A stretch of DNA of 64,000 bases. Origin: Dicyema japonicum. Lineage: Eukaryota; Animalia; Dicyemida. Positions 6,061-62,930 of this stretch are shown here, piece by piece. A program made the position numbers and the translations under genes. Location of the stretch: contig RDEW01000027.1 in NCBI GenBank assembly GCA_011109175.1, positions 70,028 to 134,027 of the forward strand, written 5' to 3'. Under the pieces are notes generated by a model. The model was given only the letters and a program-made list of their open reading frames with translations, did not search any database and was not told the DNA's origin. Position 1 is the first letter of the stretch, and every line of letters starts with the position of its first letter.

Positions 6061-6675
6061 CTGGCGAACAGGCAGGCGAGGAAGGTTGTTGATTATTAAA
6101 TATTGACTTTTTATTGTTTATTAAATAAAGATGGAGTATTATAATTACCTGAAAAATCTTCAATAATTATCTTATCGTTCTCTCCCTGACCAAACCCTCT
6201 GATGAAGATTGCATTATGAAAACTATTCCGCTAAAGAATGAACTGATGTCTGCGACAGTAGGACGTGGGACAAAAATGGAAGAGGGCGGACGTAAGCCTG
6301 AAATGAAGTATTGGAAGATGGATTTTGTCGGCACAAGCAGATGTTCTCACTTTGGTTCCTTTCTTGGATTAGTTAGTTATGACTGTTTGTGCTGGGCTTC
6401 AATGGTAAGTCTGGGGTTAATAATAATAATTATTATTATTCTCGGTTAACCTAAGTACTTCACACTGTCCTTGTGACGGAGCGGCGAAAGAGCACGAAGT
6501 ACTGGTCGATAAATGAAGTAATTGTGGAAAGGCTAGATGCCGCTCGAGCTTTCTGCACAAACAAAGGGCCCAGTCGGGATGACTCTTTTTTCATGAAAGG
6601 ACGACAACAATTGTTTGTATGATCTCCTAGAAAGAAAAGTCTTGATCGAATGCAAAAAATTATAGGCCAATTTTT

Positions 6676-6975
6676 ATACACAGAGAAAGAAGTTAAAGTA
6701 AACAACTAATTAAGTATATCCAGTTTCCACTTCTACAGAAACAGAGTCTATCCGGATTCAGCATAAAAGGAAAAAGACGTCCATACTTGCAGTTGTGGAA
6801 ACCCCTCCAGTGGAGTGGGGAAGAGCAAATGATCATTTTTCGTGCCACCCAGGCACTGGGCGCCACCTAGACAGGTGGATCACATGACACCACTCTAATA
6901 GGAGGAGAAATAGTAGAAACAGATAGACAAACAGAAAACCTCAACTAATTAGCCACGCAGCACCACATGGTGCAA
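6676..6975 (-). mobile_element. SINE-like family A copy
   Basis: Homologous along about 290 bp to 27893-28190, 52868-53165 and 62497-62785. Confidence 0.85.
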
Positions 6976-7019
6976 CGCGGCGAGGAAGGAAAATATTTCT
7001 GACACACTTTGTCACTTTA

Positions 7020-8815
7020 TTATTATTATTCACGAGAGCCATAATATTTATAGCAGCAAAAAATATAAGCATGTGCAGCAAAAAATATAAAAAAATAGTT
7101 AGCTTGCTCCAAGCTCTTCTGTTCTTAGCCAGGTCCCTCAGTGTGTCCAGATCGTCACCAGATGCCAATGTTTTCTTCACGGCTTTCAGGTCGTCTTGTA
7201 AAACGACCAGGAGGGTTGTTCTTGATCTTCCGAGAAAGCGTTTTATATGGAGGAGTAATAATCTTCCACTGCGAAATTCGTTGGAGATTTCGGGTCCAAC
7301 CTCAGAACGCGTCCAAAAAGTCTCCAACGAACGCTAATGATCTCGTGACTTAATGGTGTACAATCACACTTATTGTACAGTCTTTTCCGCGAGATCTTGG
7401 ATGGCCAAAAACAACCCTCTCGGTCGTTTTACAAGACGACCTGAAAGCCGAGAAGGAAACATTGATTCCAGTTATGTTTCTTATATGATTCCTGTGAAAC
7501 GATTTTAGGCTCTCCAATTCCTCTTTTGAAGTAGCCCAGGTCCCAGAGTTGTATAGGAGGATTGGTTAGATAAAGGTGTCGTGTAACATTATCCTTTGTT
7601 TTATGTTATATCCTTTCCGTTTTTCAGCCTGTGTAATGCCGCGTTTGCCATGGTTTTTCTCCGAATGATATCTTCACTATCTCCTAATAGGGATTCAAGT
7701 TTCTTTATGTGTCTTCATTTTTCTTCGAGTTATTATTCATTCGTCTTATTCCTGTCCATTCTGTTTTTTCCCTGTTACGGTGAGAAACCATTTCCCAAGT
7801 ATATCTGGTGCTTTTTCTACTATATCTGGTGCTATTTCCAGGAGTTCTTTGTATTCAGAGAATAGGTTGACATCATCAGCATAAATAACTTCTTTTATTT
7901 TTCCTTGGTATTATAATCTCAGTTCCCTCATAGCGGTCTCCAAGTATATTGTAAATAGTAGCGGAGGGAAGGAGTCTTTTTGAGGAGTGCCTGTGTTTGT
8001 TTCAAATTTTTTTGAGTAGGTTGTTCCAACTCTCACAAGGAGCTCTGTGTTAGATAGAAAAATTTGGATCTTTCTTAGACTCGATTCGTCAATAAAGCCT
8101 TCCAGCACTGTCATCAATTTGTTCATGTTAACCGAGTTAAAGGCTTTTGATAGATCTATTCTCTGAATGTGGGTGAAATTGCAATATCTTTGATGTGTTG
8201 CACATCTCCATCTGTGACTCCAGACTGCATCAGCTGTTGATCTTTTTTCTCTGAACCCACTTTGACTTTCGAGTAGGTAGTCATAGGCGGGTCCTTTTAT
8301 TCGTTCCAATACAATGTTAGCTAAGACTTTCCATAGAGAATTTGATAATATAATCGGTCGCTAGTTTTCAACCGGTCCTTTGGGTATATTGGGTTTTTGT
8401 ATATGTATTAGTAATCCCGTTCCCAAGGGTAAAGTTGAGTTAGTTGAAAACATTTCATTTAGTAGTGTAGCGATATTTTCAAAATGGGGGTAAGGCCGAA
8501 TTTTAGTAATTCTGGGATTATCGTATCTGGTCTAGGGCTTCTATTATTTTTTAGTTTTTGACATGCTGTTTTTACTTCCAAAATTGTAATTGGTTCTTTC
8601 AAGGGTCTAGGCTTTTTTTTGAATGAGGGATTGATGTAATCACATTGAGAAGTTTTTCAAAATGTGTTGCAATTACCTCCGCTTGCTCTTCACTATTCAG
8701 TAATGTCCTGCCATTTTTGTCTTTAATGATTATTCGTTTTTTTCCGGTTTGTGTGGCGTAGAATTGATTTTGCGAAGCAGTTCTTCTTGATGGAGTGTTC
8801 TGATATTTCTAAGAA
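7020..8815 (-). mobile_element. Degenerate RTE-clade LINE (RT and 3' end)
   Basis: QSGFREKRSTADAV...DLSKAFNSV...TGTPQKDSFPPLLFTIYL...YADDV. C-terminal GRSRTTLLVVLQDDLK...NRRAW, ending in atggctctcgtgaataataataa. Confidence 0.85.
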
Positions 8816-8819
8816 TTTA

Positions 8820-9004
8820 ATCCCTTTGTTAAATAAATTTTAAAATGTGAATAAAAAAAGAACTATCTAAAACAAATTTAATAAAAATTAAAAAAATAAT
8901 ATTTTTTCATAAAAATGTGCGGATTCGAGAATTTTGTAGATAAAATGTATTTTGACCGATTGGATGGCGGATTCATGAGGTGACACATTCGATAAAATTT
9001 ACTG
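8820..9004 (-). mobile_element. Solo end of a pogo/Tigger-like element
   Basis: Ends ...tttactg|ta and carries gcggattc subterminal repeats, like the Tigger end at 19700-19914. Confidence 0.55.
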
Positions 9005-9329
9005 TACTTTTTTTCAATTGTGCAATGAGTAGGGCGATTTTTATCAGTAAAGCCAAAAATTCATATGTTCTTTAAAGTTGTTTAAAACCTCTAAAATGTA
9101 GTTATTAATCGAAAATATTATATAAATCAAAATTTAAAATCTAAAAAGTCAAAATTTGGGTAGTGTATTTTTAAAAGTAGGTTGAAGGGTCTAATTTCAC
9201 GATAGCCGACACTCATTTATAATCAGCTACAATGAGAGTCGGAAACTTTCAAAAATGCTCGACCACATGAAGACATGTCGCTTTCAAGTCTGATGCAGTA
9301 GAAACCTCAGAGATTCTGACACAAATCGC

Positions 9330-9480
9330 TATTTTCAACATAAATAAATAAAGCAATTTACGAGGAGCCAGATTAGTTATCGCTCCTCCCAGACTTTAAT
9401 TTAAGCAAAAAACAGTTATCATAACTAATTGATGAAGGAGAACCAAGGAATATTCTGCACTTCTGGTATTTAAACTTTAT
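9330..9480 (-). mobile_element. tRNA-SINE family C, 3' fragment
   Basis: Tail ...ggagcgataactaatctggctcctcgtaaattgc matches the tails at 34460 and 41240. Confidence 0.65.
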
Positions 9481-9489
9481 TACGACATC

Positions 9490-10075
9490 TTTGTCGAATA
9501 GTTATGTAATCTACTTTTCTCAGGTGACAACTAATGTTATGGTAACACGAAAAAGGATCATTTGCTCTCTCCTACTATACTGGAGAAAATTCCACAGCTA
9601 CAAAGACTGGACTGATTAGGAAATTGTCACATTTTGGATATATGAAAGAAAAATTGTTAGCGCAGGTGGTTACTCTATATGGTAGGGTCAGTGTCAAAAG
9701 ACACAGAAAAAAGAAACTTTTCCCCTCATTCAATCGATACGTGTGGCTGGTTAGTATGCTTCGGCTCTGAATGTGAGGCGTCGTGTATTTATTGAATACT
9801 TATGATTTCTTGAGACATAGAACCAAATCCAGGACCAAGATTCTTTGCTATTATGCAGATCAATGTTGACGGCATAAAACCAAAGATCCTGTATCTGTTG
9901 AAACACAAGATCGATATTTCCATTATCTCCAACAACAATGATAGAATTCGATACAAATCACTGGTCATAATTTTTTTAGGGTTTTTAAGTGACAGGGGTG
10001 ATATGAGCTTTAGGAATAGGAGAGGAACTCCAGAATGTCGATAGAATTGAATGAGGCAGTATTTGACCGACAAGT
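9490..10075 (+). mobile_element. 5' fragment of a 2A-APE LINE, with family A motif copies upstream
   Basis: ILMIS*DIEPNPGP (9814-9837) is followed by the APE start IMQINVDGIKPKI. Junction motifs lie at about 9500-9570 and 9660-9730. Confidence 0.75.
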
Positions 10076-10079
10076 ACTT

Positions 10080-10700
10080 TCATAGCTAATTGTGGTTCGA
10101 ATGAATCGTTTATATATGATAATTAGGCCTTTTCTGCTTTAGCATAAAGAATACCATGACACAGCTTTCAGTATGTTGATTTTGCGAGAAGCTTTTGTGC
10201 ATTGTTCCTCACATGTTTCGAAAAAGTCTTTAGTTAGTCGAAAATAACTAACAAGTATTTTGGGATGTTTCGTAACGGGAATTTTTAAAATTGGTTTAAG
10301 ATTTAGTTGGCGACGGTTGAATGTGAATATAGTGATGGATTTCAATGGAGGAGATAAATGATTTGCTTCGAGCCACTCCCAAGAAAGTTCAAGTGGTTCT
10401 GGACATCATTTGTTGTTTCGTTAAAACTCCGAGTATTTGTGTGCAAGGCTGTTTATGTTAAATTGAATGACATTGAGGAATTTCGCATTTTTGTGGAGGC
10501 CCTGGGTTCTGTTCGATATCCCAAGCGAGGATTCTGAAGCGACAATCCGATCTCTGGGAGCGGAAGCTTTGGCCCTCTCAACAGCTGCCATCATACATTC
10601 GACCTCCCTTACGTCGTTGAACAGGTTGACATGGGAGTAATTGTGGTTCATTTAGTTGTCAAATTGATACTGCCATCCAATTTTCGCCACGTGTAGGTGA
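10080..10700 (-). mobile_element. Internally deleted 2A-APE LINE fragments
   Basis: ILAWDIEQNPGP (10497-10520) then the frameshifted APE start VIQFNINSL. A post-RT fragment (KASRKINILKAVS) lies at 10139-10345. Confidence 0.7.
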
Positions 10701-11097
10701 ACTACGTCAAATTTCGAAATATCAGTACCAGAGTACACTTAATCCAGATACTCTAAGAATTTAGATGATTCTTATCAGAACAAATATTACTCGAAACAAA
10801 TATATTTTTGATACTAAAAGCCTAAATAATTTTCATCAGCAATCTACATTCTTCAGTGCAAAACAAGTTTTATTCAACCTTAACATAAGTATTCTTTATT
10901 TGAAAGCAAAACTAAAAATCGTCTAATACGAAAATAGGTTAAAATCCATTATTCTGGAAGTCGTTGTGCTACCGCATAACCACAAAAATAAAATTACATT
11001 TAAATTAAAAAAATAATCAGATAAATTATTACTCTATTTAATTAAAATTAATTGAATAAATTAGTGCCACGCTTGAACATAAAATAAGGACAAATTT

Positions 11098-14000
11098 ATG
11101 AGTGATAACGATCGACTGCTAGATTTTGATAATTCAAAGAAAGCCAAGTCAGGACTTTATCAGCTGCTCAGAAAATCTCTGAAAGGACAGATTAATAGCA
11201 GTGACGATCTTTTGGAATTACCACAAAATATGGAATGTTTCTTTATTGATGAAAAAATAGCAAATCAATCCAGTTCTCGTTGCATCAATCTGTGGACTGT
11301 GTTTTACAAACTTTATGCTTTTAAATTCTGTGCGATCGGTCTCTTGCAATTGTTATTCATCGGATCTTATCTGACGATGCCTCTTTTACTCAAATATATT
11401 ATGAATTCCTACTCGAATGGCAATAATCTGACAATAATTATGTACTCATCAATTATGCTTGCTCTCATTTTGGTGCAGTCATTCACTGACATGGCCTTTT
11501 GTTATTTCTCAGTAAAATATGGCATCGAGGCCTCTTCTATCGTGGCCACACAGGTTTACTCAAAAATTATGAAAACTTCTAAATCTATTCTGAGTCAATT
11601 GGAATCTGGAAAAATTTATAATTTCGTGAGCACAGACGCATTTCGAATTTCCACATTTTTTGAGAACTTTCATTTACTCTGGAAAATGGGACTAGAAATC
11701 ATAGTTTCCTTCTCACTGATATTTTGGGAGATTGGATACTCCGCCTTCCCCGCTTTGGGAGTTATAATATTAGTTATTCCTTTTAACAAACTCATTGTTA
11801 AAATTATTATGAAAAAGAACAAACTGATGATGGAATACAAGGATCGACGTGTTCAGGTTTGAATTTCGCTTATTTGTAGCAAATATTCGAGGTCATTCAT
11901 TACATTAGACAAGTGAAACTGAATGTCCTAGAAAATATGTTTTTAAACAAGATCAATCACTTCAGGAGTCTTGAACTTAAACAACTAACTTGGATTAAAT
12001 ATTTAGACGGATTTTGTGTATTTTTGTGGGCCTCAACCCCGTTGATTATTTCCGTTCTAACATTCATCACTTACAGTTTGCTTGGTCACGAATTGACTGC
12101 AACAAAAGTACGACGGCCATTGTAAGTTTCAGATCTTTACATGTCTGTCGCTGCTCAATATTCTGATCTCCCCTTTAAATAGTCTTCCTTGGGTTCTGAA
12201 CGGATTGATTGAGTCAATAATATCTCTTCGGAGAGTTCAAGATTTTCTGCTTTTAACTGAAATTGAAGAAATTCCACAGTCTGAGTCAATTGGGGACCTT
12301 CAGAGACCTCTGTTTATTTCAGATAAAATTGTGGAGTTGGAAAACTGTGACCTCGGTTATAATAACGCTGAAAGACTACGAAATATAAATTTTTCTGTCG
12401 GATCGGTACTTTACCCATGTCAATAAAAGGGAGAATTGGTTTTTGTCACCGGAAAAGTAGGCGCTGGAAAAACCATGTTAATCAACGCTATCCTTAGAGA
12501 AATTCCAATTTTTGAAGGATTCTGTCAACTACCTAATAAATTTGTACAGAAGATAGGATTCTGTCCCCAATGTCCGTGGATTCGAAATTGCACCATTAGA
12601 GAGAACATCACACTAGGGTTTACCTACAAAAAAATGAAGTATAAAAGCATACTGAACCTTTGTGGATTGTTAGACGATCTTCAAGTTGTTACATATTTAT
12701 TTTAGAATATGAATTCTGGAGATTTAACGATTGCAGGCCCGAATGGAATTAAACTTAGTGGGGGACAAAAAATAAGAATTGGATTAGCAAGGCTACTTTA
12801 TCAAGTTTACCTTACAATTTATAATTGAGGACGTTGACGTGTATGTTTTAGATGATCCCTTCGCATCCTTGAATATGGAAATAGCTGATAGTATCTTTTA
12901 CGATTGCATTATCAATCAACTGATAGAAAACAAAAAAACTGTGATCCTCATATCAAACGAATGTAAGTACATGTCATCAGCAGACAAAATCTATTACATA
13001 AAAAATAAAACAGTCGTAAACGAAAGTAAGTCATTCCTTAAGTCAGATCCCTTTTATTTGTTTAACGCGAATTTTGATCCAAATGGAAACAGTTATTCGC
13101 GTAGTACAAAAAATCTGTCAGAAGATTTAAAAATTGATGAGATCATTGAGGATGAGACACATCATGAACTAAAACAAGTAGGGAATGTACGGTGGAGCGT
13201 CTATAAGACTTATTTCTCATTGTCTGGATGTCCTTTACTATTTTTGGTCGTTGTCTCAATGTTCCTTATGCAAGGTATTCTGAGGCTGATCACAATAGGA
13301 AGTAACACTGCAAGCCAATGGTGGCTCTACTATTGGTCACAGCAAACGAAAAACCAGAGCCTGAATTTGCCAATAAACAATCATGGGAATGATTTGTATT
13401 TCTATTTGTACATATACGGCGGAATAGGAGGATTCAATATATTGGTTACCCTCGTCAGAGCCTTCTCCTTTGCTGGCTTTGCCATTAAGGCTGCAAAAAA
13501 TTGTCACAATAAGTTAATAAACTCAGTTATAGCAGTAAAATATACAATATACGATAGGCCAAAATGACGTTTTTTTACAAAGTCCCAATAGGGAGAATTA
13601 TTAACAGGTTTTCTAAGGACACGAATACAATCGACGATACCCTCCCATTTGGCCTTAATATTTTAGTTAGCGTCATATTTGCTTTATTTGGAGTTTTATC
13701 CCTTCAGTTATATGGATTTCCGTGGTCAGGTGTTTTTCTGGTGGTCCTTTCCTTCTTTTATTTTTGCTTGCAAGTAGACTAAATTGTTATATCAGAAATG
13801 CTATAGACATTCGGTTAGAGAAATTAGAAGAATTTCAAGCTTAGGGTTTTCTCATGTTCTAGAGGAGGTTGAAGAGACTCTTTCTGGTGTGGCAGTATTA
13901 CGAGGCCTGTATGAACGGCATTCTTAGTATAGATTTTTATAATTTTTAGTTTTAAAAGTTTATTTTATGGACATTTTGACTTCTATCAGAGATCTAAATA

Positions 14001-15010
14001 TTCTGATTTGATTATAACTATTTTGTTCAGTTTTTGTCTGAAAATGCTCGGATTTTTTTTCATGGCTTTTGTGATATTTGGAAATTTTGTCAATTTCTTA
14101 GAAACTGGAGTTATTAATATCGGTTTTGTGAGTTATAAACCTCAGGAAAACTCGGTCTTGTACTGTCAAATGGATTTGTCATCAGTTCTTTTCTCATGCT
14201 ACTCATTAAGATGCTTTCCGAGACTGAGCGTGAGATCGTAGCTGTTGAGAGGACTTTGGAGTACAGCGAACTTCCCTCTGAATCTTTTGAAAGTCAAAAG
14301 GAAGACTGGAATGCTTCCCAGGGATTATTAATATTTGATCATGTATCGTTTAGTTATGATAACGGAAAAACATTCACTTTCAAGGACATCTCATTTTCAG
14401 TCCACCAGGGAGATAAAATTGGAATCATTGGCCGAACGGGAGTTGGAAAGTCTACTCTGTTCGCTGTCCTTTCCAGATTAGTTGAAATTTGGAGCGGAAA
14501 AATATTTTACGATGGTATGAGTATCGCCGATTTGAATATCAATACTTTAAGAAAAAATTTGACGATTGTTTCACAAGATTCTTTTATTTTTGGAAGTTCT
14601 GTAAGAGAAAATCTTGTTTGTAATTCTACCAGAAAAAATATTGAAGACTCCGATATTTGGAGTGTTCTGAAAAAATGTAATTTGGTTGAAACTATCACAT
14701 GTCTCGGGGGTCTCGATGCGACTCTAACTGAAAGTCAGCTTTCTTTTGGCGAGAAAAAGCTCCTCAGTCTTGCAAGGATTTTTTTCTCATTTTCAAAAGT
14801 AGATTATATTTTTGCATAAAGATTCTCTGTTTTGACGAAATCACTGCGGGAGTCGATGAAGAAACCGAAAAAATGCTCATTGAGGCTCTCGACAAATTAC
14901 TGCATGGTCGAACAGCTTTGATAATTACGCACAAATCAAATTTACTAAAATTATGCAACAGAATCTTTGTTTTTGAAACTTCATCTTTAACAGAGACTAT
15001 AACTTATTGA
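11098..15010 (+). CDS. ABCC10: ABC transporter C family, MRP7/ABCC10-like (12 exons)
   Basis: Splices cleanly through 11 GT-AG introns: 11857-11879, 12108-12132, 12406-12429, 12685-12705, 12805-12829, 13275-13298, 13535-13557, 13774-13795, 13927-13949, 14123-14145, 14799-14821. NBD1 has GKVGAGKT, LSGGQ, LDDP; NBD2 has GRTGVGKS, LSFGE, FDE, H-loop. IKYLDGFCVFLWASTPLIISVLTFITYSLLGHELTATKIFT matches the ABCC10 subfamily. Stop TGA at 15008-15010. Confidence 0.92.
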
Positions 15011-15260: not shown

Positions 15261-18030
15261 AACGGGGACGGTCTCATTCTCCATAGATTTCCCGCATTTT
15301 CTAGATAGTCAGATATAGAGAGTGAAAGCGGACTGCCGATTTTTATTGCCCACTGTAGAAATGACTTCACTCTCCACCTTAGGTGTTCTTTAACATTCAA
15401 TACGTTATCCACAGTTTTCTTATTTATTATTTTCAACGCAGCAAGTTGTGCGGCTTCTAATTTTTGAGACGACGATTCAGAAATCATCGAGCTCCAGGAG
15501 GGACATGCGTATTCGATTACTGGCAGTATGTATTGTCTGTAAATTTTCTGTAGTAAAAAGGTGTTGTGCCCGATTGGTGATCGGGACAAAATTTTCAGTA
15601 TGTTGGTCCTCCTCCTGACTTTGGTAATAACGTCATTGACGTGTTGGCCGAATGTCAGGAGAGTATCCAACTTTAATCCTAGTATTGTTGGAGACCTATT
15701 CATAGGAATTTCATATCCAAACAATTTGATTTTGGGAGAGTATAATGATCTTCTATATGTAGAAAAAATTGTTATAAATGACTTTCCTGTAGAAACTTCC
15801 AGTCGATTTGATATGAGCCAGTGTTCCAACATACCAATATAACTTTGAAGTTTTATCCATCCTTTCTCATATTAGAGTCTCTCGTCGCAAGAACAATATC
15901 ATCTGCGTATGAGAGTATCAATGTATCGGGATCATCATTGGTGGGAAGGTCATTGGTGTACAAGTTGAAGAGCAGGGGAGAGAGAGGTGAACCTTGAGGG
16001 ACATCATTCGCCAATAAACGGGATTTAGATTTTCTGTTGTCCAACATCACTTGTCCTCTTCTTCCATTTAGAAAGTTCGACAGCCATCTTTTAATGTTTG
16101 GATTTATAAGAGTGTCAGAAATTTTCTCTATAAGTAGCGTCCGGGACACGGAGTCGAATGCTTTCTTCAAGTCTATTGAAGCCATTATGGTCCTTTTATG
16201 TGGTTTTGGATAGGAGAATCCATCAGATATATATTGAGTTAATTTTGTTAAGTGAGTCGTAGTAGAATGATTTTCACAGAATCCATGCTGGAATACTCGA
16301 TTTGGTACAATATCTTTGATTCGTGTTAAGATTAATTTTTCTAAAATTCGGGACATCGCACATAGTATTGCAATTGGACGATAAGAAGAGGGATCGTTTG
16401 CAGGTTTGTTTGGCTTCCGAATTGGCAGAATTATGGATTTCTTCCATATAGAAGGTATCATATATTGTTCACAGATAGAGTATAAACGTATTATAGGAAT
16501 TTGGTTGCTTTTTCACCAAGATGTTTCAGTTCCATCATCGAGACATTGTCAGCACCTCGGGAACGGGAGTTTTTGGCATCCATGATTGCGTTTCGAACTT
16601 CTTGCGGAGTAAAGACAATCAAATCATATGATGGATACAACTTCTTCTTGTAGACTCTGTGTTCCCTCGAAAAATATTTATGGCTGATTCCGACATAGTG
16701 CTTCATTAAAATATTTAGGTCTATGTTGCTACATCCCTGTCCGTGGAGGTCTTTCTCAGAGCCTTCATTGCATTTTCTCAAATATTTAATTTTCCTCCAT
16801 ATAAGCGTCTCGGATGTATTTGGCGATAGAAAATCAATAAGTGATGCCCATCGCTTCTTGTTTCTAGACTGGGTAACTTGTTTAATTTGTATATTTAAGG
16901 TTTTCATTTTTTTGGAAATCGTCATTTGATACTTACTTTTGCTTCTTTAATTTATTTCTTTCTCTGATAAGTGTTTTTGTATGCATATTATAATATGTAT
17001 TCCTTGTTTGATAGCATCCTATTGGAATAAATAGTTTTCTTGCTTTGAGTATAATGTCCGTGAAAGTTTTGATCCATGTGGTCAATTGATGAGAATATCA
17101 ATGTGTAAAATACTTCCATATTGGTGTCGATGTAATTAGAGAAGTTGGACCAATCTACGCTTTCAAAGTTTAAAAAAGTGTAATTCTGTCAGATAAATTT
17201 GTTTTCAGTGTTTATTTTCATCATAATAGGGTTGTGATCACTTCTTGGTTTATATTTTACAGTCCAGTTGATGAGGGGAAACATTGATGGGGAACATGAG
17301 GAGTGGTCAGGGGATGTAGGTTTGTCTCCTTTTCGAGTAGGTGTTCTTGTATTGCTTACGGTGTTATTCAATATACAAAATTGTTCCAAATTTCTACCAG
17401 TAGGTTTCCTCTACTGTCTGGTTTCTAGCCTTCATACCATAATTGATGTTTGGCGTTGATGTCACCGCATAGTAGTACGTTTTTGAGGTTTGAGAATATC
17501 TGTAGGTTAGGGTAGTACCCACTTGGACAGGAGGTATTAGGGGGAATATATACATTGACAATATTTATAGTTTTCCTAGGAATTCTAAAATTTATGCCAA
17601 TTAGTTCCAAAGGGTCATATTCTAGATAGAGTTTTCTGATTTTGTTTGAAACATCTTCATATTGAATTCCATTTCTTATTAGTGTCATTAGTCCTCCACC
17701 AAGCTTAATCTTTCTGTCTTTACGGATAATGGAGTATCCGGAAAAGGTTAGGGTTCGTATGTTTGCTTTTAGTTTTGTCTCTTGGACTAGAGCAATGTCA
17801 ATTTCATTACTATTGAGTAAGTGGCGGACTTCCAGCACCTTGTTTCGTATTCCGTTAATATTGATCTGGACCAGGTTGATTTCAGGGCCTGGGTTGGATT
17901 CGACGTCACCACACAAAATTAGAGCGTACCTAAAAAACCATCCTCTTTCATAGATAGGAATAGGGAAAGTGTAGTTCTTTTCAACATCATGTGATGCACA
18001 ACACCACCATACAGGTGAAAGACATTTATT
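15233..18030 (-). mobile_element. Near full-length I-group (Ingi/Vingi-like) LINE: 2A-APE-RT, no RNase H seen
   Basis: ALILCGDVESNPGP (17884-17907), APE (QININGI, LVQETKL, LCGDINAKH, SDHNP), RT (YRPIAIL, QHGF, DLKKAFDSV, VPQGSPLSP, YADD) and post-RT region. Several frameshifts. Confidence 0.9.
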
Positions 18031-18425
18031 AAAAATTTCGGATTAATTTATTTTGGTTTTATTGCACATTTAAATTAATTTACATTTTTAATTTAAAGTC
18101 TTACAGTGCCACCTGGTTAGAAAGAGGACCGAAATTTCTATTGCACATGAAAGAAAGATTTGTGAAATAAAAAAATAAATCTAAAATGACTCTCAAATTA
18201 TTCCATATTTGTGAAATAAAAATTAATCTTTATTTAAGAATTTCGACACTTAGAAATTCTTTAAAATCGTGAAAATGGAAAAACTGTGAAACCATGATTA
18301 ACAAGTCAAGACAACCAGGTGGTAAACATCATCAACTTGATAAATCACTTGTTGAATGGATTTCAAGGATGGATACAATCAATGGTTTTATTACTGAAGA
18401 TATCAGCACTTCAAAAGCTAAAGTA

Positions 18426-26959: not shown

Positions 26960-27230
26960 AAGCGGGGGGTAAAACCAAACTAACTGATTCCTTGATCCTG
27001 ACACGTTCCTGCAAAACCCTCACCCAAGCACAATGATCCAGAGGTTGGTAGCTGAAGTCAATTCCAGAATCCGACACCAAGGAGCGAAATTGTCTTCCGG
27101 TGGAATGAATAGATAGATCATTTTGAATGCCGGTCCGGCTTTGAGCGTCTCCTGAGTAAGGTGGATCCAATGCGCCACCCAAGAAAAGTAAGAGAAAACT
27201 CAATTAATTAACCACGTGGAAAGAATGTGG
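26960..27230 (-). mobile_element. SINE-like family B copy (variant of family A)
   Basis: Minus-strand tggatccaccttactcaggagacgctcaaagccggaccggcattcaaaatgatc is homologous to 39190-39400. Confidence 0.7.
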
Positions 27231-27850: not shown

Positions 27851-27892
27851 ATCAGAATCTACTTTCTTTGATTAATTATTTTTTAATTAATT

Positions 27893-28190
27893 TATTAACC
27901 CCGGATACACCGAAAAAGAAGTTAAAGTAAACAACTAATTAAGTGAATCCAGTGTTCCACTTCTACAGAAACAAAGTCCATCCGGAATCAGCATAAAAGG
28001 TAAGACGTCCATTACATGCAGTTATGGAAACCCCTCCAGTGGAGTGGGGAAGAGCAAATGATCTTTTTTCGTGGCGGCCTGGTACTGGGCGTCACCTAGA
28101 CAGGTGGATCACATGACGCCACTCTAATAGGAAGAGAGAGGAGGAACAGACAAGCAAGCAGAAAACTTCAACCAATTAACCACTCGGTTA
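27893..28190 (-). mobile_element. SINE-like family A copy
   Basis: High similarity to 6676-6975 and 52868-53165, including the tail cggtgtatccggggttaataaa. Confidence 0.88.
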
Positions 28191-30509: not shown

Positions 30510-30734
30510 TTAATGGTAACTAACATATTTAATGTCATTAAATGGTCTTTTTTGGTTTACTTGGGGTACTAAGCATTACCTTAGACATTTGAACCGCCTG
30601 ACATTATGTAGTTAAAGAAAACCATCTCCCAAGTAGCCAACGATGGAATAGAATTCTTGAGTGTTGAGAAATTTGTCACAACATAAGAGCTTCATCAGAT
30701 GGATGACTCATTTTTTATCAAGAAAAATAATTAG

Positions 30735-39189: not shown

Positions 39190-39400
39190 TAACTCTTTGA
39201 GTCGTTCCATCATTCCAGAACTTGTCACAAGGTAACGACGTTGTCCCCGGGGAAGAATTGTTGGATCCTCTTGATGCCGGCCAGGCATTGGGCGCCTCCT
39301 CAGTAAGGTGGATCCAGTGACGCCATCGGAAGGAAGGAAAATAATTTTGACAAACTATCCATGTAGCACCACATGGCGCCACGCGAAATTTCCGATAGGT
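39190..39400 (-). mobile_element. SINE-like family B copy
   Basis: Head cgcgtggcgccatgtggtgctac plus junction motif tggatccacc...atgcctggccggcat...gatcca. Confidence 0.75.
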
Positions 39401-40669: not shown

Positions 40670-41190
40670 GCGGTGTCGTTCGTGCAACGTTAATGTGGTA
40701 TCGTATGGCTACTTGTTTGAAGATTTCGTTTGCGTTCTTCTGTTCTCCCCCGTGTTCTCCTAGAGTCATGTCATGTGATCTACCTGTCTCAGGTTGAGCC
40801 TAGTGTGATACAAAAAAGGATCATTTTCTCTCCCCTACTCCATTTGAATGGTCCCCATAACTGCCAGGATTTGAGGCTTTCTTTCCTTTCAGTTGTTTCT
40901 GAATGGACTTGTGTGACATGGAAGTACTTTCTTTTCTGTGACCGTGGGAACTGGATACAATTAATTAGTTGTAAACTATTAATTTTTTTATTACACAAGT
41001 TCCTCCAGAACCCAATAAAAAAAACTTTATTCCTCGTAGTTGTGAGAACCATTTTTAAAGAAGTGGAAGAGAACATACGATCCATCTTGGCACTGAGTGC
41101 CACTTGATACAGATGTATCACATGACGTCACTCGGAAGATAGGGAAGAGAATAAAAGATGATAAAAAACCTTCCACCAAGTAGCTCGTGG
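40670..41190. mobile_element. Two degraded family A copies in opposite orientation
   Basis: gtcatgtgatctacctgtctcaggtt...aaaggatcattt at about 40765-40830 (+), and gtcatgtgatac...tggcactcagtgcca at about 41085-41130 (-). Confidence 0.6.
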
Positions 41191-48900: not shown

Positions 48901-49299
48901 TCACTCATCTGGTACATTAACTATATATTTTTTTCTGAGTGCTGTAATTGAAGGGACGTGATAATTTAATTCAACAAATTTGGAAAATGGAAAATTTCAG
49001 AATTTTATCAACAATTTTAAAATAGTCATTGGTAATAATGAAAATAACTAAATTTAGTTTAATTACGAAAACAAAAAAGAATAAACTATTAAATTCTATC
49101 GAAATAAAATAAATTTCCGATCGCCTCTTTTTGATAATACGAATATTTTCTTTAAATCTTCTATACCAGTTGTTATCAAGAATTTTGAAATATTATTTAT
49201 GCATTATTTTGTCATATTGATAAGAGCCTTCTTGGACACTCCTACGCAAGACCTGTGATACCATCTTGAACAGGCTGCACAAGCGATCATTTTTTTTCT

Positions 49300-50080
49300 C
49301 ATATTAGTTACGTTGCACTTTTCACATGGATAGGTGTTTTCCTTCCTTTCTTCATTAGTCTTCATTGTTGTGTCTGTATTTTCTTATTTCTTAAATCTTT
49401 TCCAAGTTTAAATCTAAACTCAATATTTTTGTAATGTCTCAAAAGATGTATTTTGAGCTACATTTTTTTAACTTCCATCCACGCTTTTTTAACAAGTACC
49501 ATAATCTGTCGCATATCTATATTTTTCAAAGATTAATTGTTGTATCTTCTTCCAAATCTATTATTAAAAGTATTTTTCTATCTTATGAGAGAAAGTTGTC
49601 GTTAATCTTTGAAAGCCACATTTTGAAAATTTCTCTATTCATCCAGGAATTTTTTGACGCTGCATATTAAATACCGAATTTTTCACAATCAAAATATGAT
49701 TAAGCAAACTTTTCATACAACGAGGTGATTTGTATTTTCCAATAACAAGGGGTCTTAATTTATTTCCTGCTGCATTACAGCAAAGGAGAACTGTTACTCT
49801 TTCTTTACTGAATTTTGTACCATGACATGTTTCTATAGATTCGACATAAGATCTTAAAGGAAATTTTTTAACATACAAAGATGTTTCATCACAGTTAAAA
49901 ATATTTTCATGACCATAAGTTTTCAACAAATTATCGAATTGAAAGAAAAAATTTGCCAAATTACTTTTATCTGCTGAATTTTTTTCACCACAAATGGCTT
50001 TAAAAACCAGATCATGTCTCTTCTTAAATCTGTCTAACCAACCGTTTGAGGCTTGAGAAGATGTTGAATAATTCAATTAT
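49300..50080 (-). mobile_element. pogo/Tigger transposase fragment
   Basis: ASNGWLDRFKKRH...ICGEK...IFNCDETSL...KERVTVLLCCNAAGNKLRPLVIGKYKSPRC. Confidence 0.88.
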
Positions 50081-50859: not shown

Positions 50860-51280
50860 TTATTCTGATGATGGTAGAAGGCCTCCACTGATGCGGTTCT
50901 GGCGATCTAAGCGGATGCAGTCGAAAACTGGAAAATGAGGAGTAGTCGAGGACTGAGTCAACTTGTTTTCTTGAAGCAGGATCACGTCAATGTTTTGGTT
51001 GTTTGTAAAGGATCGTAATTCGAGAATTTTGCTCTTTATTCCGTTGATGTTAATCTGCAGAATTGAAAGTTGGGGACCTGGGTTGAGCTCGATGGCGCCA
51101 GAGAGTAGTAGAAGGATCCCATTGAGGGTTGATGGGAGAAGAGTTGAAGGAAGCCCCCCGTAGGAACCAACTTCGGATGGGGGTGAGCAAATGGTCCTTT
51201 TCCTAGGCGCACCCTGAGCGCCTCCAGAAACGTTGTGACTGGTAGACCACATGACCCCACGTTTAATTAGTTCCATACAT
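50860..51280 (-). mobile_element. 5' end of a 2A-APE LINE including the junction motif
   Basis: Open frame ...LLLLSGAIELNPGP (51073-51096) QLSILQININGIKSKILELR...LLQENKL. The motif gtcatgtggtctacc...ggaaaaggaccatttgctc lies at about 51180-51260. Confidence 0.85.
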
Positions 51281-51887
51281 CACAAGCAATATTAATTAAA
51301 ATTGAATAATTTTTCTACTTCTTTTAACACGTTTTCCAGACATCACAAGCAATATTAATTAGAATTTAATACAAAAAATATTTAATGATTTAAATAATTG
51401 ATTTTTTGTTGATTTAAATCTAACAACCTTGGTTGAATCTATTTATTGTAGCTCTTTCAACTTGTCTTTGTACCCATGGTGCTCTAGGCCTTCCAGAGGT
51501 ATGCTTTATTTTAAAAAATTCACAGAGCTTTTTCATTTCAGAATTGCGAAACTCCTTTCCCTTATCAGTTTAAGAATAACGGGTTCTACTGTAAACATAT
51601 TTTCAAAGTAGAGATGAGATTTCCAATGCACTCTTATTCTTTGTTAGTTCCACAACAGCAAACTTAGTGAATTAGTCAACGACGACTGAATCCTTCATAT
51701 AAATAATTATTGAATTTTACCCACGAGTTTGGTCGATTTACGTCTGAATATCTTCTGAGATCTATAAGATCTGCCGTTTTTTTGTATAAACTTCCATTAA
51801 TGAAAATGTGTGGATTTTTTATTACACGGTATGAAAGTGGGAGATTTGTTTTAAAATAACATTTATGATTTTTTAATTATGACTATT

Positions 51888-52540
51888 ATTTATTAACCCC
51901 GGATACACCGAGAATTAAGTTAAAGTAAACAACTAATTAAGTGAATCCAGTTTCCACTTTACAGAAACAGAGTCCATCCGGAATCAACATAAAGGGTAAA
52001 AGACTACAAAATTTGCAGTTTTGGAAACCCCTCCAGTGCAGTGGGGAAGAGCAAATGATCCTTTTTCGTGCCGGCCTGGCATTGGGGTCAACCCTCTCTA
52101 TAGTGAACAAAATGTCCATGTAATCAAAAAGTTTCGATAAGTTTGGAACATACTTTGGAATAAGGGAGGTCGACGAACTCTGATGTGGAATATAAATATA
52201 CAGTGTAAAACGTCTTGAGAGTGAGAAAGGAACGTCGATAGAGATTTGTTCCAGAATGGGGTCTCGTTCGCAAAGAGAAGATATAAACGGGGTGACATCG
52301 GTGAACAAAGACCCTCCCTAACAAACGTCAATAATCCTCCACCGAGACTTCTTGTCCGGTCGATTCGGAGTATATTGTAGCCAGGGTAGCGTGGGGTCAC
52401 GGCTGACGTTGAGAATTTAGACTCCTGAATAATGGCAATGTCCACCTTCAAACGGGCCAAGAGGGAACGTAGCTCCAGCACTTTATTACGGATTCCATTG
52501 ACTTTGAGTTGGAGAATGACGAGCGTGGAATCTATATATA
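51888..52540 (-). mobile_element. APE fragment fused to the 3' half of a family A copy
   Basis: LQLKVNGIRNKVLELR...IIQESKF...DRTRSLGGGL at 52200-52540; family A motif and tail at 51888-52105. Confidence 0.8.
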
Positions 52541-52867: not shown

Positions 52868-53165
52868 GACGTGCCGCCATGTGGTGCTACGTGGCTAATT
52901 GGTCGAAGTTTGTCTGTTACTTCTCTTTTCCTTCCTACGTCATGTGATCCACCTGTCTAGGTGGCGCCCAGTGCCTGGCTGGCACGGAAAAAGATCATTT
53001 GCTCTTCCCCACTCCTCTGGAGGGGTTTCCACAACTCAAGTAATGGACGTATTTTACCTTTTATGATGGTTCCGAGTGGAATCTGTTTCTGTAGCAGTGG
53101 AAACTGAACATACTTAACTAGTTGTTTCTTTAACTTTTTTTCTCGCTGTATCCAAGGTTATTAAA
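52868..53165 (+). mobile_element. SINE-like family A copy (reference orientation)
   Basis: Head hairpin plus ggctaattgg, pyrimidine linker, junction motif, LINE-like tail. Confidence 0.88.
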
Positions 53166-54400: not shown

Positions 54401-55817
54401 ATCTTAGCGGTTATTGGTCGGCATGTTGAGGTGATGACACGCCTCTAATCCACGAAATGTCTACTAAGCTTCATGATGGATGAAAGGCCTTATCTTCCTT
54501 GTCGTTAAATTGGACGGTGACAGACTCAGGAGTCATTGAAAACTTGAACTTCTGAACAAAAAAGTGTCAGATGCAAGTAAGATCAGAATTCAAATGAACT
54601 AGAGGATCATCTCTAGTATGATTATATGTATGATGATAATAATGAGATGACATTGTGATAAAGACTTCTCTCAGTAGCTTCCACTCTAACTTCCACGCCC
54701 TTTCGATATTTTCGTGTCGCTGGAAGATGCACATGGGTATCAAGTAATGTGTATTAAATTAAGAATTATCTAAGAAATAGTGGCCTTAAATATTGAAATA
54801 ATAACTCGTTTGTATTATGGTGTTGCGGTTATAATGCGAAATATCGACATTATTACATCTGTTATATATTTATGAGCGAAAATACCTTCATGAAATACAC
54901 ATATGGAAATATTAGTTACATTGACATTGGAAAATGCGTCAGTTATAGTAACAACCACATTGATTACTTAAAAAGTTATTTCAACCCTTAAGAAAAACTT
55001 AAAGAGAAGGTAATAGGCACCGATTCTTATTGCTCTTACCATTTTCATTTTGTGTTCAAAGGATCCACCGCTGACCCAAGCGTCTTCGCTTGTACCCACA
55101 TAGGAAGTCGATGGGGGAGGATCGACCTTTTCCATCGCTTAATGGATAAATATAGTAAATTACTGATTCTTAACTGAACCGGATGTCTTCGAACACAAAA
55201 CTCACTTACAAATTTGACGAATCTATCAGAAATTAAAGCTAAATGTTAAGTAACCGTGAACTATCTTCTCTAAACTCTTAGTAATTAATAGAATTAAGGT
55301 GACGTATAGCAGTACTTTTAATGATTGAAGCAACATTTTAGGCGAAGCTTGAAATCAAAACAAATTTATTTCACAAAGCCACACCTATAAAAAATAAACC
55401 GCATTACACTTTACTAATTTTTTTAATCTGTCCACAAAAAAAGCCTAAAGATAACTGGTAGAAGGATTCCATTCTGGTATATGCCTTTTTCAAATTCCTA
55501 AGAGGCTTCATACAATCTACCTGTCCTAAGATATCCCCAGTTCCTGTAAGTCATACAAAAGATCTCGCTCTTCTTACCTCACTAGAAGAATTGGTTCCCA
55601 CAATGGCGGATATGAATGGACGCGATGCTCGGAAAAAATACGTCTCATTCTGACCAAGAGAACTGGAACCACTCAGTTGAGGACTCTAACCCTGTGATTC
55701 TGGGGAATAAACAATAATAAAACAAGCGAATCTTCCAATTTCATCAAAACCAGCAGAACAAAGGGAAAATATTTTTATTAATCAAAAATACTATATAGTA
55801 AAATTTAAGAGATGATT

Positions 55818-62496: not shown

Positions 62497-62930
62497 CCAC
62501 GTGGTGCCATGTGTCTACTTTATTAAAGATTTCTCCCTTTTTTACAGAAGTGGCGTCATATGATTTACCTGTCTCAGGTTGCGCCCAGTGGCAGGGCGGC
62601 ACGAGAAGTGATTATTTAGTCTCTCCCACTCCACTGGAAGGGATTCCACAACTGCAAGGAATGGACGTCTTTTGTTTTTTATGTTGATTCTGGATTGAGT
62701 CGTGTGAGAGTGAAGACTCTGTAGTGGGAACCGGAGGGACTTAATTAGTTGTTAACTGCAACTTCTATCTCGGTAGTGCTGTCACTCCCGTCACATTTAG
62801 CTGTGGCTTCGTTACTTTGTCGAATGGTTTCTGCTCTTTCCCTTCTTCAATTCCCAGAGTTGTCATTGGATCCACCTAACTCAGGAGATTTAAAAGATCC
62901 GTCTTTTTTCTACTTCAGTGGTGGATACTT
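62497..62930 (+). mobile_element. Family A copy followed by a truncated family B motif
   Basis: gtcatatgatttacctgtctcaggttgcgcccagtgg...ggcacgagaagtgattat at about 62550-62615; tggatccacctaactcaggag at about 62868. Confidence 0.8.

Follow-up and report, generated by a model that had tools for sequence, protein, structure and literature searches.

What is a small folded motif from the leader of a long interspersed nuclear element (LINE) doing in the middle of short, non-coding repeats? The question is raised by a 64,000-nucleotide stretch of the genome of Dicyema japonicum (GenBank assembly GCA_011109175.1, contig RDEW01000027.1, positions 70,028 to 134,027 of the forward strand). The whole of this stretch is called the window here; all positions refer to it, and features on its minus strand are marked (−). 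The starting point is copy A52, an element of the short interspersed nuclear element (SINE) type at 52868–53165 (+), whose motif the original prediction described as a covarying three-way junction in RNA. Ribozymes resembling that of hepatitis delta virus (HDV) trim LINE transcripts and help to translate them, and the 5′ parts of LINEs are known to become SINE bodies. Our best explanation, which we judge to have an even chance of being correct, is that the motif belongs to an HDV-type leader module of a LINE family encoding 2A peptides, and that SINE-like derivatives inherited this module as a slow or conditional ribozyme or, more probably, as a folded platform.

The core of the motif in A52 lies at 52945–52997 and reads, segment by segment, TGATC, CACC tgtcta GGTG, GCGCCCA, GTGCC tggct GGCAC, GGAAAAA and GATCA. 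Helices are numbered here as in an HDV-like fold, and the P1, P2 and P3 of the original prediction thus appear as P2, P3 and P4. The outer stem, P2, joins TGATC (52945–52949) to GATCA (52993–52997), and is supported by both RNAalifold and pair counting. Between its strands lie the P3 hairpin (52950–52963), with a core of either 3 bp (CCT/AGG) or ACC/GGT around a 6-nt loop, and the P4 hairpin GTGCC tggct GGCAC (52971–52985). These are followed by a C and GGAAAAA (52985–52992) in a position resembling J4/2, where nearly every copy has a C and then a run of purines or A. A52 as a whole is a SINE-like, internally deleted LINE-type element, with a head, a T/C-rich spacer, the module, a GC hairpin and a LINE-like 3′ tail.

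Copies of this arrangement are spread through the window. A BLAST comparison of A52 with the window gave copies at 80–82% in 6676–6970 (−), 27888–28183 (−) and 51888–52086 (−), together with several partial ones. A covariance model of nine aligned copies with three nested helices, searched without filters, gave 14 matches, of which 12 are clear (E ≤ 0.002) and two, at 55495 and 30536, are weak and decayed. All ten short elements listed by the original prediction contain a match, and further copies lie at 41071–41138 (−), 55495–55573 (+) and 30536–30614 (−). The module is complete in A52 (52927–53004, +), in the best-scoring copy (6823–6900 (−), 98.5 bits), and in copies of three families named alpha, beta and gamma: alpha at 28052–28129 (−), with a damaged P4; beta at 39255–39333 (−) and 27107–27185 (−); and gamma at 40758–40830 (+), with P1 and P4 decayed, and 62543–62621 (+), with P2 broken. 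It is also complete, and strongly AT-decayed, at 9489–9567 (+). The copy at 41071–41138 (−), found by BLAST and the covariance model, is without the 3′ strand of P4 and J4/2; that at 52049–52100 (−) is truncated at its 5′ side and begins within the 3′ strand of P1; and that at 62850–62907 (+) is partial, with an internal deletion. The decayed copies at 55495–55573 (+) and 30536–30614 (−) have E values of 0.002 and 0.09, respectively. One match, of 63 bits, does not belong to a short element: it lies at 51185–51267 (−), within the 5′ leader of a 2A LINE that carries an internal deletion.

The short elements form at least three families in which head and module are common and the downstream parts differ. 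They contain no long open reading frame (ORF), a tRNA-like head was sought in them and not found, and comparison of the SINE head with the sequence upstream of the LINE copy gave no significant homology. Their 3′ tail, taken from loose contig ends, runs ...CCGGGGTTAAT(AAAT)n, and its likeness to a LINE 3′ end was judged by eye. In public contigs matched to 6600–12500, the summed k-mer depth over the short element came to 4,000–7,000 times single-copy depth. In the alpha family (52998–53031 and equivalents) and in the LINE copy (51140–51190 (−)), the module is succeeded by a GC-rich hairpin (CCCC...GGGG), and the beta family has CCCCGGGG at this place; such a hairpin may be relevant to how the module folds.

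Evidence for the nested helices comes from a set of seven better-kept copies, trimmed to the module, from which decayed, broken and partial copies were excluded. On this set RNAalifold recovered P2 with 5 bp, P3 with 3 bp (CCU/AGG) and P4 with 5 bp, and four pairs were kept through changes on both sides. Two of these are in the outer stem, which is paired in all seven copies: in one, T-A gives way to G-C (tgatc/gatca against ggatc/gatcc), and in the other, A-T is replaced by G-C (the tggtc/gacca of the LINE). The original prediction had named just these three forms as covariation, and both compensations were seen. A third change, T-A to A-T, is in the first hairpin (cct/agg vs cca/tgg in the LINE), whose CCU/AGG is likewise paired in seven of seven. 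The fourth affects the outer pair of the second hairpin, where the beta family has A-T in place of G-C (gtgcc/ggcac vs atgcc/ggcat). This last contrast is the part of the covariation claimed for that hairpin which stood; gtgtc/gacac and gcatc/gatgt came from candidate LINE 5′ ends that gave no significant match to the model, and tgtta/taaca sits in a copy in which most G and C have decayed to A and T.

Pair counting over the same seven copies, with P1 included, gave 91.3% of cells paired compared with 85.5 ± 1.2% in shuffled sets, and a covariation score of 0.221 compared with 0.117; none of 500 shuffles reached either value, and controls with slid registers paired in 32–51% of cells. Over all 14 matches the paired fraction was 76.9%, which 11 of 500 shuffles reached. 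Folding of single sequences was unremarkable (z from −1.6 to +0.75). In this AT-rich window, a loose descriptor of the three-way junction fitted well over a hundred places, so that the bare architecture is not evidence. Taken together, these comparisons of aligned copies modestly support the nested fold. The proposal of a selected RNA structure common to the LINE 5′ leader and SINE-like families held up, given the compensating changes and the preservation of the module between families whose flanks are unlike.

The segment that had been read as a 7-nt linker, GCGCCCA, is probably a helix strand. The best-conserved unpaired blocks of the module are complementary to one another: GGCGTC, separated from the outer stem by 3 nt, and GGCGCC, made up of the last G of the first hairpin and the beginning of the linker. 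In A52 the 5′ strand of this P1 would lie at 52935–52941, where it is degenerate (CTACGTC; other copies have TGGCGTC or TGGTGTC), and the 3′ strand GGCGCC with a J1/4 of CA at 52963–52970. None of the other 5-bp registers, in a total of 84 between the upstream block and the linker, pairs as well as this one (0.80 of cells paired; mean 0.38, standard deviation 0.14). The duplex has a calculated energy of −8.5 to −12.3 kcal/mol (p 0.013–0.074 against shuffled upstream sequence), and P1 is 83% paired in the seven-copy set. With the linker paired to GGCGTC, the three-way junction would become a nested pseudoknot of HDV type, with the order P1-P2-P3-P1′-P4-P2′. The original prediction recognised no named family; HDV-like ribozymes are already well known at LINE 5′ ends. 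Helix order alone is weak evidence, with a loose HDV descriptor matching 153 places in the window; 6831–6891 (−) and 39265–39324 (−) pass a descriptor that allows no mismatch. Neither the loose HDV descriptor nor that for the three-way junction gave a credible match upstream of the other 2A sites.

Finer details of the core agree with a delta-type fold to varying degrees. HDV-like ribozymes have a P1 of 6–7 bp that usually opens with a G.U wobble at the cleavage-site G; here the majority of copies open P1 with G-C, and three, including the LINE, with G.U. With CCU/AGG as P3, its loop has only 4–5 nt, compared with the usual length of about 7 nt; the alternative ACC/GGU has a loop of 6–7 nt and abuts P1′, with an A-A mismatch in the beta family and the LINE. 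A P1.1 could form between a UG in L3 and the CA of J1/4 in the alpha and gamma families and one beta copy; this pairing is impossible in 27107–27185 and in the LINE copy. In nearly all copies P4 is followed, at the J4/2 position, by a candidate catalytic C and then GAA, AAG or AAA. On balance, we regard the delta-type fold as probably right.

Related LINEs point in the same direction. The endonuclease ORF of the LINE at 17425–17916 has homologues in other organisms that are 32–39% identical, and the loci of relatives (L002, L004 and L006) were obtained from Logan run SRR15069915 and ENA assembly ERZ26859072. L002 reads, at 1–73, GGACTT cact GGCGAT t GGT tctccgc ACC AAGTCC ac, P4, ccaaag ATCGCC; this fold begins at base 1, about 100 nt upstream of the 2A motif of L002. 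L006 has AGAGCG aag GATGC a GCC tgcacgc GGT CGCTTT gc TCGATC cgatctg GATCGA caaatg GCATC at 1285–1350, about 130 nt upstream of its 2A. The counterpart in L004 (about 1216–1281, GGAGCG aaa GATGC ...) has two G.U pairs in P1, and was hence unreported by the fold scan; the L004 and L006 sequences become alike at about the predicted cut site. All three are textbook HDV-type layouts. The module, with segment lengths of 6, 3, 5, 1, 3, 6, 3, 0, 6, 2, 5, 5, 5, 7 and 5, matches L006 and L004 (6, 3, 5, 1, 3, 7, 3, 0, 6, 2, 6, 7, 6, 6 and 5) closely, and also resembles L002; the folds of these relatives lie 100–130 nt upstream of their 2A motifs. Unlike the module, the relatives have a 7-nt L3 ending in CGC, longer P2 and P4, in L004 a G.U first pair, and a position right where the element or contig begins. 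A candidate HDV fold in L001 (2665–2754) was set aside, as it lies outside the part common to sister copies. In L006, three tandem copies of the first approximately 17 nt of the ribozyme stand upstream of the fold.

The known HDV-like ribozymes at LINE 5′ ends (L1Tc/ingi Pr77-L1TcRz, R2 and RTE; Ruminski et al. 2011; PMC3185411, PMC4035085) have the same helix order as the module, whose putative 6-bp P1, 3-bp P3, short J1/2, C opening J4/2 and possible alternative three-helix form would also correspond to theirs. In L1Tc the ribozyme precedes a 2A peptide in the LINE leader, is shared as a 5′ ribozyme/promoter with NARTc, and can refold to a three-helix form (PMC3185411, PMC3383444, PMC4035085); in NARTc, RIME and SIDER, as here, the fold is common to internally deleted, non-autonomous elements. 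The module differs from these ribozymes in lying 65–90 nt inside the elements and not at base 1, in its mostly G-C first pair, in an L3 of 4–6 nt without the CGC end, in a P1 without covariation and in a start codon within J1/2; its cleavage is a prediction. A second precedent is the use of 5′ parts of RTE and Vingi LINEs as SINE bodies, in bipartite non-autonomous LINEs with a LINE 5′ segment in mid-element and a LINE-like 3′ tail (Kojima 2018, PMC5786205). The short elements of the window are built in this way, with a segment shared with the LINE 5′ end (that matched at 51185–51267), a LINE-type tail and no coding capacity. They differ from those SINEs in having no tRNA, 5S or snRNA head and in being hosted by an animal genome with tiny introns. 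The same study pointed out that a SINE whose body held an active ribozyme would be truncated by it, and is without discussion of the fold of the shared segment.

The place of the module within the LINE gives it a further peculiarity. Five 2A motifs (D-x-E-x-N-P-G-P) precede LINE endonuclease domains in the window, and the 2A (StopGo) motif of the LINE with the module (51074–51096 (−)) is about 160 nt downstream of it. The LINE copy of the module lies in an open frame, MELIKRGVMWSTSH...AIELNPGP, and overlaps the start of the 2A leader frame. This leader frame has its in-frame start at a conserved ATG, the J1/2 that separates the upstream block from the outer stem (52942–52944 in A52); the LINE reads ATG-TGG, and the SINE-like copies read ATG-TGA (52942–52947, 6881–6886 (−), 28110–28115 (−) and 40773–40778) or, at 9506–9511, ATG-TAA. 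The G>A change that creates the stop is compensated in the outer stem (gacca>gatca). Homologues of the 138-aa LINE leader ORF were sought and none were found, and two LINEs that were compared have dissimilar leader peptides; protein-coding constraint is thereby ruled out as the cause of the conservation.

The original prediction had placed the same architecture in four LINE 5′ ends, and of these only 51185–51267 (−) is significant. Local covariance-model searches at 17900–18120, 9570–9840 and 10495–10780 returned a borderline match at 17965–18035 (−), upstream of the 2A of another LINE (6.2 bits, E 0.09 in a 221-nt search), in which CACCTGTATGGTGG is kept and which may be a diverged relative of the module. 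The scores at 9675–9722 (4.2 bits, local E 0.33) and 10635–10697 (−) (2.4 bits, local E 0.9) are insufficient to count these candidate LINE 5′ ends as members.

A number of observations weigh against a delta-type module, some of them concerning its fold. RNAalifold, which had been suggested as a check and which returned the three helices on the seven better copies, gave no structure on the first nine, and few independent evolutionary events, about one per family split, lie behind all of the counts. P1 has no two-sided change, its variation being compatible with wobble pairing only. In the LINE copy it is interrupted by a G-G mismatch and gains no support from its duplex energy (p 0.59), and the linker there can pair downstream instead (GGCGC...GCGCC); pairing of the linker with the following strand is also possible in 41071–41138 and the alpha family, and over the copies involves 66% of cells. 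The prevalence of G-C over G.U as the first pair and the short L3 of 4–6 nt depart from the expected form, and the candidate catalytic C of the alpha family can close P4. Nucleotide similarity between the module and the folds of L002, L004 and L006 is not significant. A search of Rfam at the gathering threshold and at E ≤ 10, with the whole window and a 121-nt core, gave nothing relevant; Rfam also misses the textbook folds in L002 and L006, so its silence has little weight. Strings of the module searched in the full text of the literature gave only chance matches to primers.

Other points of this kind concern cleavage. A conserved head and a T/C-rich spacer, together 65–90 nt long, are retained upstream of the would-be cut in every SINE-like copy, and of about 12 copies in the window not one begins at that point; self-cleavage directly 5′ of P1 in an HDV-like ribozyme should leave elements that start at +1, and the SINE-like copies do not start there. 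In the three runs of genomic DNA (X1, X3 and X4), the summed depth over the half with module, spacer and head is 78–86% of that over the 3′ half, and contigs of the RNA-like run X5 span the predicted cut site uncut. No pile-up of molecule ends was listed among these data, which are contigs without 5′-end information. Because the short elements keep their upstream 65–90 nt and contigs span the site, the RNAs that were copied were uncut. Efficient cleavage in vivo seems unlikely to us.

The preferred explanation is a leader module of HDV type that SINE-like derivatives inherited. The motif would be the core of a module of about 72 nt in the leader of a 2A-encoding LINE family, passed on to its short non-autonomous derivatives, which are SINE-like and without a tRNA head. 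The three helices first described would be P2, P3 and P4 of an HDV-like fold and GGCGCC the 3′ strand of P1, pairing with GGCGUC 3 nt upstream of P2; J1/2 would hold the start codon, and a C and A-rich run would occupy the catalytic J4/2 place. The most likely ancestors of the module are the ordinary HDV-like ribozymes found at the head of related 2A LINEs, in which the ribozyme trims the transcript and helps its cap-independent translation. In the elements of the window it would be at most a slow or conditional ribozyme. More probably, it would serve as a folded platform to which LINE protein or ribosomes bind and which SINEs need for their mobilization.

A sharper version of this explanation, which we offer tentatively and think clearly less likely than not, is that the module is an HDV-derived pseudoknot that no longer cleaves efficiently and now serves as a non-catalytic docking module for the binding of LINE protein or the recruitment of ribosomes. 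The start codon in J1/2 would then have become the compensated AUG-UGA start-stop of the SINEs, and thousands of head-bearing SINEs would need the module to hijack the LINE machinery.

It is rather unlikely that the module is instead an active HDV-like ribozyme that cuts 5′ of GGCGUC in vivo, in LINE and possibly SINE transcripts, with cut RNAs serving translation and uncut RNAs being copied. The layout, spacing and position of the J4/2 C match those of relatives, three copies including the LINE have the G.U first pair, and L1TcRz, which L1Tc shares with NARTc (PMC3185411), is a precedent. In the minus-strand leader, immediately upstream of the LINE copy, a 38-nt unit is repeated with a 63-nt period (51271–51308 and 51334–51371), and both units run into AACGTG, where an HDV-type cut would fall. 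Against it stand the window copies, none of which begins at the cut, the contigs, with no listed pile-up of ends, the head kept in most genomic copies, the short L3 and a core that is degenerate in many copies. A 10-nt direct repeat, AATTATTCAA, at 51302–51311 and 50064–50073 is a candidate target-site duplication of this LINE, in which case the element would begin about 42 nt upstream of P1.

Less probable again is a three-way junction that lacks the pseudoknot, is unrelated to HDV and surrounds the LINE start codon, where it would act like an internal ribosome entry site or bind reverse transcriptase, with the complementarity of P1 a coincidence. Such a structure is the minimum-energy fold of both A52 and the LINE copy, places the start codon at the junction and accounts for compensating changes that are all in the nested helices and none in P1, whose complementarity alone has a p of about 0.01–0.07. 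However, the register in which the two best-conserved unpaired blocks can pair is the one with canonical HDV spacing, HDV-type folds occupy the same place in related 2A LINEs, and a conserved, single-stranded, GC-rich 7-mer would need an explanation of its own.

We consider it improbable that the block is kept as DNA, as an internal promoter of the LINE whose stems are by-products with no function at the RNA level. Non-autonomous elements without RNA polymerase III boxes need a promoter, and Pr77 of L1Tc is one (PMC3383444). The upstream strand resembles a cAMP response element, TGACGTCA in one copy (41120–41127 (−)) and TGGCGTCA in most, the linker has GGCGCC, and the heads (52877–52900 and 62497–62515) have E-box-like CACGTG/CATGTG boxes that are possible promoter elements. 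The weak folding z-scores and the empty RNAalifold result on the unselected set would also fit. Four double changes that keep pairing, two of them transversions or strand-specific, speak for RNA, as do G.U pairs that fit the sense RNA only and the pairing of P2 and P3 in seven of seven copies each; moreover, promoter and RNA fold are compatible, as in Pr77/L1TcRz.

A variant type III hammerhead or twister-type ribozyme can be dismissed as very improbable: the two hairpins, closing stem and A-rich strand after the second hairpin recall the type III hammerhead/twister variants that head Perere-3 LINEs in Schistosoma, another spiralian parasite (PMC8501958), but the conserved catalytic cores are absent and Rfam gave no match at E 10. 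For the hammerhead, to which a resemblance had been noted, GCGCCCA stands where CUGANGA must be, GAAA is out of register, and no G12-A13-A14 is in register with the closing stem; for twister, including T-variants, the L4 GUCCCAAGC, the 3′ GAGGG strand and the UAA cleavage loop of the published consensus (PMC8501958) are all missing.

The surroundings of the module fit a dicyemid genome. The genome of D. japonicum consists of 49% repeats and has a mean intron length of 38 bp (PMC6736024), and the window combines tiny introns with repeat-saturated intergenic DNA. The contigs of X1, X3 and X4 run through introns and represent genomic DNA about 1.4% different from the window. An ABC-transporter gene with ABC_membrane and ABC_tran domains lies at 11098–14819 (+); the contigs of X5 are without 48 and 24 letters inside it, which is RNA-like and indicates introns of about 24 nt. 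Adjoining a SINE copy, 6994–8766 is another highly repeated element, with a summed k-mer depth of about 400–1,150 times single-copy and many contig variants without 54–57 nt at 7407–7465. Downstream of the (TAA)n tail of the LINE with the module, at about 49000–50060 (−), frames resemble, by eye, a fragment of a pogo/Tigger-type DDE transposase.

If the docking reading were true, it would provide a mechanistic cause for the link between LINE clades that bear ribozymes and bipartite non-autonomous elements. In this very compact animal genome a putative delta-type fold stands in the middle of a repeat whose depth is thousands of times single-copy, where cutting would destroy the repeat's own front end. 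These elements may therefore offer a natural test case for a second, non-cutting role of delta-type folds in retrotransposition, and for the way in which a ribozyme can accommodate a start codon and a 2A leader.

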